Virus record (IMG/VR): IMGVR_UViG_3300049793_000366
Span: 372,001 to 436,000 of that record
Strand: one strand, 5' to 3'
DNA: 64,000 bases
Position numbers and translations under genes: made by a program. Shown piece by piece: positions 35,698 to 63,402 of the stretch; position 1 is the first letter of the stretch, and every line of letters starts with the position of its first letter. The notes under the pieces are model-generated. The model was not told where the DNA came from, did not search any database, and saw only the letters and a list, made by a program, of their open reading frames with translations.

Positions 35698-35771
35698 TGA
35701 GGGGTAGCTCAGTGGTAAGAGCGCCGGGACGGAAAACCCGGAGGTCGTTGGTTCGAATCTAACCCCCTCTA
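35698..35771 (+). tRNA. Initiator-like tRNA body with an 8-nt anticodon loop ACGGAAAA
   Basis: U1-U72 mismatch, GAGGGG/CCCCTC, CCGGG/CCCGG stem, AGGTC variable loop. Confidence 0.6.
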
Positions 35772-35779
35772 CAAAGAAT

Positions 35780-58384: not shown

Positions 58385-58909
58385 ATGAGAAAGCAGAAAC
58401 AGCAACTACATAGACTCAACAATCAAATCACACACGAAACAGTGAGAGTGATATCTGATGAGAATGGACAGAGGTTATCAACTGTAATGTCAATAAATGA
58501 GGCACTGCAATTAGCAGATAGTCTTGCTGTTGATTTAGTAGAGGTAACACCTAATGCTAACCCACCTATTTGTAGAGTTGTGGAGTATGGTAAATTCCTT
58601 TATGAGTTAAAGAAAAAGGAAAAAGAAAACTCTAAGAAATCTCAACAACAAGAAGTTAAAGAGTTAAGACTAACCCCTCACACTGATGAACATGACTTCG
58701 AGTTTAAGCTAAAACACGCAGAGGCTTGGCTTAAGAAAGGAGATAAAGTAAAAGCTACTGTCTTCTTCAAAGGAAGAGAAATAGTTTACCAGGATCAAGG
58801 TAGAGTACTTTTGCTTAAATTAGCTGATACATTAAAGGATATTTCAAAGGCTGAGAGTTTACCTATTCTGATGGGTAAACGAATGTCGATAACGATATCA
58901 CCTAAATAA
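58385..58909 (+). CDS. infC: Translation initiation factor IF-3
   Basis: DLVEVTPNANPPICRVVEYGKFLYE, KELRL, GDKVK, GRE. Confidence 0.95.
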   Translation: MRKQKQQLHRLNNQITHETVRVISDENGQRLSTVMSINEALQLADSLAVDLVEVTPNANPPICRVVEYGKFLYELKKKEKENSKKSQQQEVKELRLTPHTDEHDFEFKLKHAEAWLKKGDKVKATVFFKGREIVYQDQGRVLLLKLADTLKDISKAESLPILMGKRMSITISPK

Positions 58910-59272: not shown

Positions 59273-59301
59273 AAAATATTTTAAAAAAAATTAAAAATAA
59301 A

Positions 59302-59332
59302 TTTGCAATATCAAAAAATGTCCATATTTTTG
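59302..59332 (+). promoter_or_regulatory. Bacteroidota-type promoter of the HU/ncRNA operon
   Basis: TTTG 59302-59305, TATTTTTG 59325-59332. Confidence 0.65.
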
Positions 59333-59414
59333 TGACATAAATAAGAAGAATAAATTTTAACAAAAAATATTTAGTTAGAATGTAAACTTTTTAAAACATC
59401 AACATTATAACATC

Positions 59415-59441
59415 TCACTTCGGTGAAAACGTTCTTTAAAA
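59415..59441 (+). promoter_or_regulatory. Putative boxB-boxA antitermination element
   Basis: Hairpin TCAC-TTCG-GTGA followed by GTTCTTTAAAA. Confidence 0.5.
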
Positions 59442-59476
59442 TATTTCATTTTTGTTTTTTAAATACTGAGCTAAAT

Positions 59477-59549
59477 GGCGCTGTCGTCTACTGGAAGGAC
59501 GCTACTTTGTTCAAAGTGGAAACATACGGTTCGAATCCTATCGGCGCTA
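59477..59549 (+). tRNA. Glu-like tRNA-like RNA with extended anticodon arm and bulged T stem
   Basis: GGCGCTG/CGGCGCT; CTACTTT-GTTC-AAAGTGG; ATA[C]GG/CCTAT. Confidence 0.55.
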
Positions 59550-59665
59550 CAAATGTTAAAAGTTAGAAAAATATTTAAACTTCTCTAAACTTTTAAAAAC
59601 TCAAAGATTATAACATATAACTTTGTACAACATAACAAGCAAAGTAAATAAAAAACAAAAGAAAA

Positions 59666-59938
59666 ATGAATAAAGCTGAATTAATTGATGTTATTGCGAA
59701 AGAAGCAAACTTAACAAAAACATCCGCTACACAAGCGTTAGACGCAACTCTTGCTGCTATCACTAGCTCTTTGAGCAATGGCGACAAGGTAACACTTGTA
59801 GGTTTTGGTACATTTTCAGTTTCTAAGAGAGCAGCCCGCAAAGGTCGCAATCCAAAAACTGGTGAAGTAATCCAAATCTCTGCAAAGAATGTTGCAAAGT
59901 TCAAAGCTGGTTCTGAGTTATCTTCTTCAGTGAAGTAA
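59666..59938 (+). CDS. hup: HU family DNA-binding protein
   Basis: [34 protein letters not shown]. Confidence 0.96.
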
Positions 59939-59986
59939 TTTAAAATCACGCGAGAGTTGATTCCAAAAGAGTAAACTCTCGTACAT

Positions 59987-60060
59987 GGCGCAATCGTCTA
60001 CCGGAAGGACGCTACCCCATTTCAGGGTAGAAACGTATGGTTCGAATCCTGCTTGCGCTA
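59987..60060 (+). tRNA. Glu-like tRNA-like RNA with 6-bp anticodon stem and bulged T stem
   Basis: GGCGCAA/TTGCGCT; CTACCC-CATTTCA-GGGTAG; GTA[T]GG/CCTGC. Confidence 0.6.
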
Positions 60061-60069
60061 CAATGTGCC

Positions 60070-60460
60070 AATCTCGGTTGGCTTCTCAGTGAGGTGAACA
60101 CTGTGCTATATATGAGAAGTTGTTGTCAACTTTTATAACTAAAAAACACATTGCGTTCATTTTAATACGGCAAATTTTCACTGGTTAAAAACCGAGCGTA
60201 AATGTCTTGTAACGTAAGAGCTTAATAAATTGGGTGGAAGATACGCCGCCAAGTATTGAGTTAAACACATTAAGTTGTGTGAGTCGATGCGAACAAAAAG
60301 GTCCAGTAGTTAGACTGCCTTTAAGGTTTATGATTCATAATAGAATTATATTCTTTACTGAAAATGAATACACAACTAGGCCTGTGGTTGAGGAAGTTGA
60401 ACATCGATTAGATGTGAGAGTCTCCGAAATGTATTCAACAGTTCAAAAAGCTCTTACTTA
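60070..60460 (+). ncRNA. Unidentified structured RNA, about 400 nt
   Basis: Long-range pairs CTCGGTT/AACCGAG, GTAAGAGCTT/AAGCTCTTAC, GAATAC/GTATTC, GCTTCTCA/TGAGAAGT, plus many hairpins. Confidence 0.55.
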
Positions 60461-60490
60461 GCTTGTTTATAAGTAAAATTATTATAAGTT

Positions 60491-60500
60491 CGTTCTTTGA
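60491..60500 (+). promoter_or_regulatory. Putative boxA
   Basis: CGTTCTTTGA just before the large ncRNA. Confidence 0.45.
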
Positions 60501-60518
60501 TTTAAAAATTTAAAAATA

Positions 60519-61272
60519 TTGGGCAGTATAGTGTCCTACACAAATCTTCGGGTTTGTGTGAAAATAAAGCTGGTAACAGTCTATAAAGCAAACGTAGAGT
60601 TTGCGACTTCTTCACGGGAGTTTAACTATAAAATACTTAGTATGTCTTTGATGGACGAATGTTCAATGAGATATCATCATCCAACTATGGTGATTGCGTC
60701 AGAAATGATTACAAGAAAGGTAGGGTATTATGTGCGAAATGTCCAAACATTAGTGCGTGTGCTATCTGATTAAGTTATACAACGTATAGTTTATATTCGC
60801 AAGGGTATTTATTATACATGGGCGACTGAAGCAGACGTGAGCTGGAAACTCACAGAAGGGCGTTTAGTATTTTGTTCTCAAAAGGAACGAAGCTATACCA
60901 CACAGGCGTCCTTCATACAAATAGTTGTTATCTAACATGATTTTGAAATATCAAAAAAGCAAAATCTGTGTGGCGCTGGAGTCGAAAGGTCTCTAATTCC
61001 ATCCGTTGCGAAACGAAGATGGAGTCTAATATCCCGCAAGGATATGGATTTAGCTAAGAAAAATCTAGTGGGCGCAACCCTTAGTCAGTTCGCAAGACTG
61101 AATAGACAGAGTAGCAGTTGAGTAGACAAACTGGTCAAACAGTTCTAGCGATACGAGTGATTACCGTAAGGAATCGAGACTGACAGAATACTTATCGCAA
61201 GGTGAGTGGATAATGAGAGAACCAATAATGCTCAGAAAGATTTGTCGACCAAAGCTATAATCTCAAGCTTTT
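60519..61272 (+). ncRNA. Large ornate ncRNA, GOLLD-like (about 750 nt)
   Basis: Five CGCAA-loop hairpins, UUCG/GCGA/GAAA loops, long-range helices (GAAGGGCG/CGTCCTTC, CACACAG/CTGTGTG); tRNA-flanked phage context; family call is from memory. Confidence 0.6.
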
Positions 61273-61276
61273 TTAC

Positions 61277-61350
61277 GGCGTGTTCGTCTATCGGAAGGAC
61301 GCTACCCCATTTCAGGGTAGAAACGTATGGTTCGAATCCTGCACACGCTA
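61277..61350 (+). tRNA. Glu-like tRNA-like RNA, near copy of 59987-60060
   Basis: Identical from GGAAGGAC through the T arm; acceptor GGCGTGT/ACACGCT co-varies. Confidence 0.6.
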
Positions 61351-61368
61351 CTGAGTAAAATAAAATAT

Positions 61369-61481
61369 GGCGAGTTCTTCTAGCGGACTAAGCTGAACAA
61401 CGCACTTCTACTGTGTTATTCGCTTAAAGGATGCCGTTCTTTTCAGAATGGAGACAGCAGGTTCGAATCCTCTACTCGCTA
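61369..61481 (+). tRNA. tRNA-like RNA of the same family with a hairpin inserted in the D loop
   Basis: GGCGAGT/ACTCGCT; CCGTTCT-TTTC-AGAATGG; AG[C]AGG/CCTCT; about 35-nt D-loop insert. Confidence 0.5.
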
Positions 61482-61530
61482 CAAACAGTAATGCCAAGTT
61501 TTCCAGACTCTTTTATTGTTTACCATGAAG

Positions 61531-61562
61531 AAGCCGATGTGATTTATCATATCGGTTTTTTT
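61531..61562 (+). terminator. Intrinsic terminator ending the ncRNA operon
   Basis: aagccgatgtga-tt-tatcatatcggtt + T tract. Confidence 0.75.
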
Positions 61563-61563
61563 A

Positions 61564-61595
61564 TTTGGTCATGTCCGGAATTATGATTATATTTG
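61564..61595 (+). promoter_or_regulatory. Bacteroidota-type promoter
   Basis: TTTG 61564-61567, TATATTTG 61588-61595. Confidence 0.72.
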
Positions 61596-61635
61596 TAACT
61601 GAATAATTTTTTTCACTTAAAACCAAAAAACAAAC

Positions 61636-63402
61636 ATGAAAGTATTTGCAATTATCTTATCACTAATCCTTGGTTGGTTATGTTATTATTTCGGAATGCC
61701 AACATTATCATTCGGCTTCATTGGATGGCCATCAACATTAATGGTAATGTCTATTCCACTTATTCTACTTGATGTAGAAGAACGAGAAGGTATGTTTAAA
61801 ACAGGAGTGGGTATAGCAGTCTTTGGTTTGTTTTTCTTAACCATTGTACCGATGCTTACAAGTTGGTCACTATTTCGCTCTGACGCATATAAATCATTAC
61901 TTGGTACAGTAAACGAAAAGAGTATAAACTCCACAATTGAACCTATCAATCCTGAGAATATTGTAATAATTGATGAACAAACAGCACATCGATTAGCTGA
62001 TAAATGCTTAAATGAATATCCGGATGCTCGTGCTATTGGTTCAGAAGTTGAACTTGGTTCACTTACACTACAAAAAGTTGGTGATAAGATGTACTATGTT
62101 GCTCCGCTATTACACCGCTCATTCTTTAAGTGGTCTTCTAACTCACAGGGTACACCAGGTTATGTTATGATTAACACAACGAATGACAAAGATGTTAAGT
62201 TTGTACAAGAAGTAAATGGTAAAAAACTACGCATTAAATATCAAGAGGGTGCCTGCTTTGGTGATAATATAGAACGACACATTTATACATCTGGTTATAA
62301 AACAAAAGGAGTATCAGATTATTCTTTTGAAGTTGATGATAATGGTACACCTTATTACATCGCCACTATATATGAGAAACAAGTTGGATATGCTGGTGAA
62401 GATGCTACTGGTGTTATAACGGTTGATGTTGCCTCTGGTGAGATTACAGAATACTCAGTAAAAGAAACACCTACATGGATTGATAGAATTTACCCAGTTG
62501 ACTTTATTAAGACACAGGTTGATGATTGGGGTTATTTCTCACATGGTTGGTTAAATCCATCTGACAAAGATAGGTTAGAGTCAACTGATGGTATATCGTT
62601 AGTATATGGTAATGATGGTCAGTGCTACTTCTATTGTGGTTTAACATCTGTTGGTAAGGATCAATCATCTATTGGATTTTTAATGATAAACTCTCGAACT
62701 AAGGAAGTTAATTACTATCATCAAGGTGGTGCTACCGAACAAGCCGCTATGGCATCTGCTGAGGGTAAAGTACAAGAGAAAGGTTATGCCGCAAGTCACC
62801 CAAGACCATATAACATTGATGGTATATGGACATATGTTATGGCTCTGAAAGATAAAGAGGGATTAATCAAAATGGTTGCTCTGGTATCAGTTAAGAATTA
62901 TGATATCGTTGGTGTTGGTCAAGACATAAAAGACGCTATACGTCAATACAAATCAGCTTTAAACTCAAGTGGTAACGTCACTACATTTGAAGGTAAGAAG
63001 TCAGACTTTGAAGTAACTGGTAAGATAACCCGATTCTCTGTTGATAATCGAAGTGGTAACTCTTATTACTATTTTATGATTGATACTATTAAAACTAAAA
63101 TATTCGTAGCAACATCCAATATATCTGATGAAGTAGTTTTAACACAGCTTAATGATATAGCAACTGTAACGTTTGCTGATGCTAATTCATATCTTATTGA
63201 TGTAAGAACCTTTGATAATAAGGGACTGAGCTTATCTAAGAGCGAAAGTCAGAATAAAGTTGAAAAATATTTTAAAACAGTTAACGATTCAATTAGTATA
63301 AAGCAAGACGCAAATGATGCAAATGCTTTATGGGACACATTGAGTGAATCTAAAAAAGCTGAAATTTTGAAATCATATCAAAAGACAAACACTAAAAAGT
63401 AA
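61636..63402 (+). CDS. Membrane-anchored hypothetical protein
   Basis: N-terminal hydrophobic helices followed by a large soluble domain. Confidence 0.7.
   Translation: MKVFAIILSLILGWLCYYFGMPTLSFGFIGWPSTLMVMSIPLILLDVEEREGMFKTGVGIAVFGLFFLTIVPMLTSWSLFRSDAYKSLLGTVNEKSINSTIEPINPENIVIIDEQTAHRLADKCLNEYPDARAIGSEVELGSLTLQKVGDKMYYVAPLLHRSFFKWSSNSQGTPGYVMINTTNDKDVKFVQEVNGKKLRIKYQEGACFGDNIERHIYTSGYKTKGVSDYSFEVDDNGTPYYIATIYEKQVGYAGEDATGVITVDVASGEITEYSVKETPTWIDRIYPVDFIKTQVDDWGYFSHGWLNPSDKDRLESTDGISLVYGNDGQCYFYCGLTSVGKDQSSIGFLMINSRTKEVNYYHQGGATEQAAMASAEGKVQEKGYAASHPRPYNIDGIWTYVMALKDKEGLIKMVALVSVKNYDIVGVGQDIKDAIRQYKSALNSSGNVTTFEGKKSDFEVTGKITRFSVDNRSGNSYYYFMIDTIKTKIFVATSNISDEVVLTQLNDIATVTFADANSYLIDVRTFDNKGLSLSKSESQNKVEKYFKTVNDSISIKQDANDANALWDTLSESKKAEILKSYQKTNTKK

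Follow-up and report, generated by a model that had tools for sequence, protein, structure and literature searches.

A candidate clade-specific structured RNA of two modules upstream of GOLLD in soil and freshwater megaphages

The locus described here raises the question of what occupies the space between a tRNA-like gene and the GOLLD RNA of a megaphage: a part of GOLLD itself, an RNA of its own, a leader, a small gene or a spacer. The window, by which we mean the whole stretch of 64,000 nucleotides that was analysed, corresponds to bases 372001-436000 of a 508-kb IMG/VR virus record and is present in a soil metagenome run. It carries 39 tRNA genes according to ARAGORN and encodes IF3 and HU as well. 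A first-pass annotation had marked one structured RNA of about 400 nt in this space, starting right after a tRNA-like gene and ending before a boxA-like site. Both borders agree with our reading of the locus: the tRNA-like gene ends at 60061 and the candidate follows directly from 60062, while the boxA-like site begins about 33 nt beyond the end of the candidate. The features of the island are, in window coordinates:

59477-59549, + strand: tRNA, low-scoring and tRNA-like
59618-59625, + strand: TAACTTTG, a match to the Bacteroidota -7 element TAnnTTTG, 5' of the HU gene (consensus match only)
59666-59938, + strand: gene of an HU-family DNA-binding protein, 90 aa (Pfam PF00216, E 1.7e-33)
59987-60061, + strand: tRNA-like gene just 5' of the candidate (ARAGORN tRNA-Lys(ttt); Rfam tRNA 39.6 bits)
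60062-60457, + strand: candidate RNA, domains 1 and 2 (homologues, folding, co-variation)
60458-60519, + strand: A/T-rich spacer, which contains the boxA-like CGTTCTTTGA at 60491-60500
60520-60854, + strand: GOLLD 5' domain of this clade, 335 nt, beginning TGGGCAGTATAG (homology to L136 spans 60520-61271)
60855-61269, + strand: GOLLD 3' domain, Rfam RF02032 (232.2 bits, E 1.4e-64, model positions 1-416 of 416)
61277-61350, + strand: tRNA-like gene, paralogue of 59987-60061 (Rfam tRNA 39.9 bits)
61368-61483, + strand: tRNA-like gene with a long insertion (its counterpart lies directly 3' of domain 1 in L129)
61534-61562, + strand: intrinsic terminator with a 9-bp stem, a 4-nt loop and seven T (read from the sequence; without a listing in the consensus scan)
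61636-63402, + strand: gene of a 588-aa protein without a Pfam domain

The four tRNA-like genes of the island (59477-59549, 59987-60061, 61277-61350 and 61368-61483) score 39-41 bits with Rfam and combine an odd D arm with a canonical T arm; most of them are missed by ARAGORN, in the window and in its relatives. The paralogues at 59987-60061 and 61277-61350 have an identical core and differing acceptor stems, each of which is mutually compensated. Elsewhere in the window, the tRNA array holds a tRNA with a four-base anticodon (ggaa) at 35698-35772, as detected by ARAGORN, which might resemble a +1 frameshift suppressor or stem from an artefact of the prediction, and a full-length IF3 (IF3_N and IF3_C) is encoded at 58385-58909, near the tRNA and GOLLD island. 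The closest cellular relatives of the HU gene are found in Chitinophagaceae, and the 588-aa protein has more than 1700 relatives, many of them in Bacteroidota genomes (Flammeovirga, Bernardetia) and some labelled "cell shape-determining protein". The relatives of these two proteins point to a Bacteroidota host, which probably belongs to the Chitinophagaceae or the Cytophagales.

We investigated whether the candidate belongs to a known RNA family or encodes a protein. The comparison of 60062-60854 with the 4227 families of Rfam, which the first-pass annotation had proposed as a check, assigned it to no family at E up to 10, apart from chance-level snoRNA matches (E 3-9) within 60062-60460. The first-pass annotation had not recognised the element as tmRNA, 6S RNA, SRP RNA or an intron, and none of these families matched, nor did RNase P, ribozymes or riboswitches; ARAGORN detected neither tRNA nor tmRNA within 60062-60460. 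The homologues in the loci L132, L145 and L129, which are introduced below, likewise have no Rfam match over the candidate at E up to 0.5, and ROOL (RF03087) was found neither in the window at E up to 10 nor in these three loci at E up to 0.5. The candidate sequence occurs only once in the 508-kb phage genome. Folding of 60062-60470 gave -109.5 kcal/mol on the + strand with a z-score of -3.84, a value that none of 100 shuffles equalled, and a z-score of -2.56 on the - strand; by parts, domain 2 alone reaches -6.0 and domain 1 alone -0.9 (range -0.7 to -1.7). An open frame of 75 codons at 60234-60461 might suggest that the candidate encodes a small protein. The predicted 75-aa product has no match in Pfam, its similarity in L132 shifts among three frames, and the longest frame in L145 does not exceed 46 codons; moreover, the insertions and deletions of 10-33 nt between lineages coincide with whole hairpins. 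Since this frame is broken or absent in the other lineages, we rejected a coding role, which for practical purposes is excluded and to which we give next to no probability.

The evidence that carries our main finding comes from related loci. Syntenic loci were found by means of the neighbouring proteins, with HU as the anchor together with the 588-aa protein, both of which have close relatives on metagenomic contigs, and the surrounding DNA was compared. The closest lineage (L132-135) has an HU that is 91% identical and is collinear with window positions 59404-61566 at about 79% identity, in the order tRNA-like gene, domain 1, domain 2, boxA, GOLLD (231 bits) and tRNA-like genes. Another lineage (L145-147), with an HU of 80% identity, has diverged forms of both domains in the order tRNA-like gene, 340 nt of extra sequence, domain 1, domain 2, boxA and GOLLD (206 bits). 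L136-139 and L148-150, whose HU is also 80% identical, lack the candidate: the tRNA-like gene is followed by about 98 nt with the same boxA and then by GOLLD (203 bits), which is homologous to window positions 60520-61271 and has a 5' region of about 410 nt. Finally, L129, from a phage recorded as a 709-kb contig with a 588-aa protein of 79% identity, is homologous to window positions 59476-60191 at 73% identity, that is, to the tRNA, HU, the tRNA-like gene and domain 1; the counterpart of the tRNA-like gene 61368-61483 comes straight after domain 1, and domain 2, boxA and GOLLD are all absent from this 11.8-kb locus. L129 also carries the same IF3 gene, where it adjoins an RNA ligase gene.

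Comparison of these loci shows that, at the level of sequence, related megaphages from soil and freshwater have conserved the candidate. The window and L132 are 74.5% identical in domain 1 and 65% in domain 2, compared to 93.7% in the GOLLD 3' domain and 76% at the third codon positions of HU. As the identity of the candidate does not exceed that of the HU third positions, selection acts on the pairing and on a few blocks. Such identical blocks measure 18-23 nt; the window and L145, for instance, agree at 62% of the third codon positions of HU, yet TGTGCCAATCTCGGTTGGCTTCT does not differ between them, and the blocks that the two have in common include one of 23 nt.

Beyond this clade the searches yielded no further copies. 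A blastn search against GenBank phages returned only a tRNA match, a search of IMG/VR with the 588-aa neighbour no related loci, and one with HU only relatives at 63% identity or less. Exact-pattern scans with motifs of domains 1 and 2 over viral, metagenome and genome contigs either came back empty or hit unrelated, partly coding DNA by chance. When 119 GOLLD loci and the 508-kb genome were searched with models of domain 1 (R1) and domain 2 (R2), no additional copy turned up, one 28-bit hit being rejected as it fell within coding sequence, and nhmmer with the candidate or with the GOLLD 5' domain found nothing in the GOLLD loci. The loci L131, L155/156 and L158 were considered as syntenic and rejected, as they are not. 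Within the reach of these data, the candidate is clade-specific. Two further stretches deserve mention: the extra 340 nt before domain 1 in L145 (3319-3655) fold with a z-score of -2.4, and a G+C-richer stretch of 370 nt after the HU position in L155 (3274-3640), which is followed by a tRNA, folds with a z-score of -2.1; neither has a match in Rfam, in the genome of the window or in the other loci.

The first-pass annotation had treated the element as one structured RNA of two closed domains with nested multiloops. That it is structured and conserved holds; the comparison resolves it into two separable modules instead of a single unit. Domain 1 was aligned by MAFFT over its four lineages (alignment A4) and its consensus of 36 pairs was derived with RNAalifold:

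60062-60212, + strand: domain 1, four hairpins, about 150 nt (alignment A4)
60067-60072/60077-60082, + strand: hairpin H1
60087-60091/60099-60103, + strand: hairpin H2
60118-60122/60127-60131, + strand: hairpin H3
60148-60158/60195-60205 (outer) and 60161-60170/60181-60189 (inner), + strand: hairpin H4

In this alignment 93% of the cells are paired, and 13 pairs have changed on both sides, compared to a mean of 6.9 in shuffled alignments; none of 500 shuffles reached the observed score. Controls with slid partners gave 0-4 such pairs with 21-49% of the cells paired. The helix that was said to close domain 1 did not survive the comparison. Its strands, CTCGGTT (60073-60079) and AACCGAG (60190-60196), are present where the first-pass annotation had placed them; the helix itself is absent from the minimum-energy fold and is not kept in relatives. 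CTCGGTT forms the loop and the 3' arm of the local hairpin H1 (60067-60082), which co-varies (A-U to G-C, C-G to U-A), and the relatives L132, L145 and L129 either lack AACCGAG or have it in altered form. Therefore, the long-range helix is unsupported, and domain 1 is best described as a row of four hairpins with no closed multiloop. An analogous closure between CUCGGU and a downstream GUCGAG, judged by eye in A4, can form in L132 and L145, is broken in the window and in L129 and overlaps the co-varying hairpins; it was rejected. The loop of H2, GAGGUGAA, looks like a Shine-Dalgarno sequence, a reading that was dropped since L129 has GAGAUGAA instead. The model R1 scores 138-164 bits on the four lineages and finds nothing convincing elsewhere.

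Domain 2 follows a shared plan into which all three of its lineages fold:

60214-60457, + strand: domain 2, multi-branched fold, 170-250 nt across lineages (shared plan in three lineages)
60214-60223/60448-60457, + strand: closing helix, 10 bp
60233-60237/60246-60250, + strand: S1, with the loop AAGAUACG
about 60253-60290, + strand: hairpin found in this phage only
60298-60301/60319-60322 and 60306-60310/60314-60318, + strand: S3, with the internal loop UCCA and a triloop
about 60323-60359, + strand: S4, variable hairpin
60365-60372/60430-60437, + strand: S5, three-way element
60373-60378/60385-60390, + strand: S5a
60392-60425, + strand: S5b, variable arm

Here the closure claimed by the first-pass annotation is borne out: the strands GTAAGAGCTT (60214-60223) and AAGCTCTTAC (60448-60457) are both in place, their 10-bp helix belongs to the minimum-energy fold, and the two further lineages with domain 2 retain this helix, which reads GUAAGAGCUU/AAGCUCUUAC in the window, CGUAAGGGC/GCUCUUACG in L132 and a helix of 7 bp in L145. 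The loop of S1 is conserved as AAGAnACG in the three lineages, and the S5 element holds a conserved CAACUAGGCnUGUnGUUG hairpin beside its variable arm. Whole hairpins of domain 2 have been gained or lost between lineages around conserved cores, as is typical of structured RNAs. An alignment anchored on conserved blocks that were chosen by the analyst contains 39 pairs, with 92% of the cells paired compared to 33-45% after sliding, and 7 compensated pairs compared to 0-3. When the 3' two-thirds were aligned by MAFFT alone (A6; 25 pairs), 96% of the cells were paired and 5 pairs compensated, a result that 4 of 500 shuffles reach. The first-pass annotation had allowed that the element might lack co-variation; the compensated pairs (13 of 36 in domain 1, 5-7 in domain 2) speak against this, in statistics that are weak and of low power because domain 1 is found in only four lineages and domain 2 in three.

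Is the candidate then simply the variable 5' part of GOLLD, as the first-pass annotation had also considered? GOLLD is among the largest bacterial and phage RNAs and assembles into a 14-mer cage; in the cryo-EM study of GOLLD env-38 the 5' region comprises residues 1-420 and the 3' region residues 421-833, with a disordered linker at 497-538, and the 5' region is less conserved than the 3' region (PMC12286853). Compared with the region lengths of env-38, the Rfam model RF02032, which matches 60855-61269 only, covers just the 3' region of GOLLD. Thus the GOLLD 5' domain is to be expected in the 330-420 nt upstream of 60855, which is downstream of the interval marked by the first-pass annotation. 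In L136-139 and L148-150 GOLLD is complete with a 5' region close in length to the 420 nt of env-38, so that in this clade the 5' domain of GOLLD corresponds to 60520-60854, and the candidate is an addition to it. The candidate fails as an obligate GOLLD 5' domain, as these loci have both GOLLD domains without it. To judge from these lineages it is not part of the GOLLD core: GOLLD occurs without the candidate (L136, L148), domain 1 occurs in an 11.8-kb locus without GOLLD (L129), and where the two occur together a conserved boxA-like site lies between them. The distinction from GOLLD drawn by the first-pass annotation is upheld, and the idea that it is simply a variable 5' part does not hold in view of this independent presence and absence.

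A boxA-like site turned out to be shared by most of the GOLLD loci sampled. Within the window CGTTCTTTGA is found a single time, as it is on the + strand of the 508-kb genome, and it is kept in L132, L145, L136 and L148 between the slot and the GOLLD 5' domain. We collected 119 GOLLD loci (L010-L128) from IMG/VR by a conserved pattern of the 3' domain, of which 103 have at least 700 nt upstream, and searched the 900 nt upstream of the GOLLD 3' domain for G[TC]TCTTT[GA]A. This motif is present on the GOLLD strand in 75 of the 103 loci, compared to 1 of 103 on the opposite strand, and lies mostly 370-520 nt upstream of the 3' domain; 65 distinct sequences give the extended consensus aAAcGTTCTTT[G/A]AAA. 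Several GOLLD loci begin with TGGGCCGT a few bases past boxA, as in the window. The 28 loci without the motif are mostly of a short subtype flanked by tRNA-Gln or tRNA-Met and by tRNA-Arg or tRNA-Ala. The motif is similar to boxA in rRNA operons, the consensus compared being the gamma-proteobacterial one, GYTCTTTAANA (PMC5725501), and in the window it stands at 60491-60500 on the transcribed strand upstream of a long RNA. With boxA as the 5' border of the GOLLD unit, the candidate lies outside this unit. Its position before about three quarters of the sampled loci suggests that GOLLD, like rRNA, may be transcribed by a Nus-factor-modified, Rho-resistant polymerase. In the open literature that we searched, the original GOLLD paper (Weinberg et al. 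2009) being outside this search, GOLLD is not linked with boxA or antitermination in this sense.

The distance between the upstream tRNA and boxA is 430 nt here, compared to 6-339 nt in other GOLLD loci, where the distance between the upstream tRNA and the GOLLD 3' domain forms a continuum of 323-806 nt. Slots of 157-257 nt between tRNA and boxA fold with z-scores of -3.6 to -4.9 (L021, L096, L035, L110, L042, L028). From these lengths and z-scores, a variable and often structured slot before boxA seems to be general to GOLLD loci; the other slots may hold further small structured RNAs or tRNA-like elements that went undetected. In our reading, the candidate occupies this variable slot, between the upstream tRNA-like gene and the boxA-like site, within a unit of HU, tRNA and GOLLD.

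As for the extent of this unit, the -7 promoter element of Bacteroidota is TAnnTTTG. On the + strand of 59300-61700 it has three matches only: at 59325, before HU at 59618, and beyond the terminator at 61588. One unit is therefore enclosed by promoter-like sites and the terminator. Together with L015, where the tRNA ends 6 nt before boxA, the positions of these consensus matches suggest that the upstream tRNA, the slot and GOLLD are co-transcribed. In three metatranscriptome runs from soil and rhizosphere, contigs cover GOLLD, 60732-61246 at about 92% identity and 60815-61003 at 98-99%, which indicates that GOLLD RNA of this or a near-identical megaphage is present in environmental RNA. No contig of the RNA libraries falls on 60062-60460; assembled contigs cannot show absence, strand or ends. 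One DNA run covers the entire region of the candidate and GOLLD; the assembly of this run is interrupted at the two near-identical tRNA-like genes, across which the read depth is even.

The comparison of lineages thus demonstrates, on the sequence level, an element that is conserved, whose pairing appears to be kept by compensatory changes, which is non-coding, belongs to no Rfam family and is present or absent independently of GOLLD. Taken as one joint statement, we consider with moderate confidence that the candidate is a clade-specific, non-coding, structured RNA of two modules, separable from GOLLD, which acts as a free accessory RNA. Transcription would start from the promoter-like site before HU and proceed through HU, the tRNA-like gene, the candidate, boxA, GOLLD and two tRNA-like genes to the terminator. 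The tRNA-like elements would serve as punctuation for RNase P and RNase Z, and the 5' end of the candidate at 60062 would be made by 3' processing of the tRNA-like gene 59987-60061. In L129, domain 1 would be cut on both sides to yield a free RNA of about 185 nt. The candidate would accordingly be a free and stable accessory RNA and not a structural piece of the GOLLD cage.

One could argue that the candidate is instead a lineage-specific accessory extension at the 5' end of GOLLD, to which it remains covalently linked; the mature RNA would then measure about 1.2 kb (60062-61269), and every protomer of the GOLLD cage would bear an extra 400 nt. In the window, we found no terminator, no Bacteroidota-type promoter match and no tRNA-like element that would separate the candidate from GOLLD, so that the mature RNA may remain joined to GOLLD. 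Such an extension would also be in line with the continuum of distances between tRNA and 3' domain and with the slots of other loci, often well folded, and domain 2 was found only beside GOLLD, in three of three lineages. However, the GOLLD of sister lineages does without the candidate, domain 1 occurs in a locus without GOLLD, and boxA and a variable A/T-rich spacer intervene; furthermore, no complementarity between loops of the candidate and of GOLLD is common to the lineages. We regard this extension as the main rival and as unlikely. Improbable to a higher degree is a form in which the candidate is a cargo or adaptor domain tethered to the GOLLD 5' end, each 14-mer nanocage having 14 copies of a swappable accessory RNA.

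Free or attached, an accessory RNA is more likely than the two explanations that deny the candidate a function in trans or any function at all. A fold that directly precedes a conserved boxA-like site and shares the strand and the inferred unit of GOLLD could act in cis, aiding a termination-resistant or folding-competent complex for GOLLD in the way that boxB/boxA leaders, put RNAs or EAR work. This is hard to reconcile with L136 and L148, where boxA and GOLLD do without the candidate, with the other loci, where boxA mostly lies 6-140 nt past the tRNA, and with L129, where domain 1 persists in a locus without boxA or GOLLD; we find such a leader very improbable. The same low probability is assigned to a neutral spacer, for example decayed tRNA genes or an older RNA module, with hairpins that were retained by chance and through common ancestry. 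Its divergence is indeed about that of synonymous sites, its distribution is narrow, the z-score of domain 1 is weak, and with few related sequences shuffle controls can be beaten without structure. A spacer would nevertheless not be expected to keep 92-96% of cells paired at 25-35% divergence, compared to 20-49% after sliding, to change on both sides in 13 pairs of domain 1 and 5-7 of domain 2, or to preserve identical blocks of 18-23 nt where synonymous sites are 62% identical. Additionally, the candidate has no tRNA match at E up to 10.

These findings present GOLLD, in one clade of soil and freshwater megaphages, as part of a modular, tRNA-punctuated non-coding unit, in which the slot before GOLLD may be empty, hold a structured RNA of two domains or hold more. 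Nature has thereby supplied comparisons with and without the candidate for testing accessory RNAs that work with the GOLLD cage. The candidate alone is of moderate interest, given its narrow distribution, and the boxA before about three quarters of the sampled GOLLD loci may outweigh it in importance, being a landmark for the true GOLLD 5' edge. If the candidate were tethered cargo after all, the slot between tRNA and boxA would be a general docking site for payloads and would offer a first functional approach to the load or the display of GOLLD cages.

Among known systems, GOLLD (RF02032) is the closest in setting: both RNAs are phage-encoded, large, structured and non-coding, and the candidate shares the tRNA island, the strand and the inferred unit of GOLLD. 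In contrast to GOLLD, it has no match to the model, lies upstream of boxA and has a domain that is also found in a locus without GOLLD. ROOL (RF03087), a large ornate phage RNA of unknown function found near tRNA genes (PMC12286853), is likewise a structured phage RNA in such a neighbourhood, whereas the candidate does not match its model and consists of 400 nt in two separable modules. The folded RNAs beside boxA in long untranslated transcripts, namely the leaders of rRNA operons and the lambda nut sites (boxB/boxA/boxC), put and EAR, resemble the candidate in this arrangement; the candidate is far larger, is dispensable for the boxA and GOLLD of other lineages, and its domain 1 persists in a locus without boxA. 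The tRNA cluster of phage T4 contains the small stable RNAs species 1 and 2 (rnaC/rnaD), which are matured from a shared precursor by tRNA-processing enzymes. The candidate is larger than these and linked to GOLLD, and the likeness is one of description. In both cases structured RNAs stand among phage tRNA genes, and the order of tRNA-like gene, domain 1 and tRNA-like gene in L129 follows the same logic.
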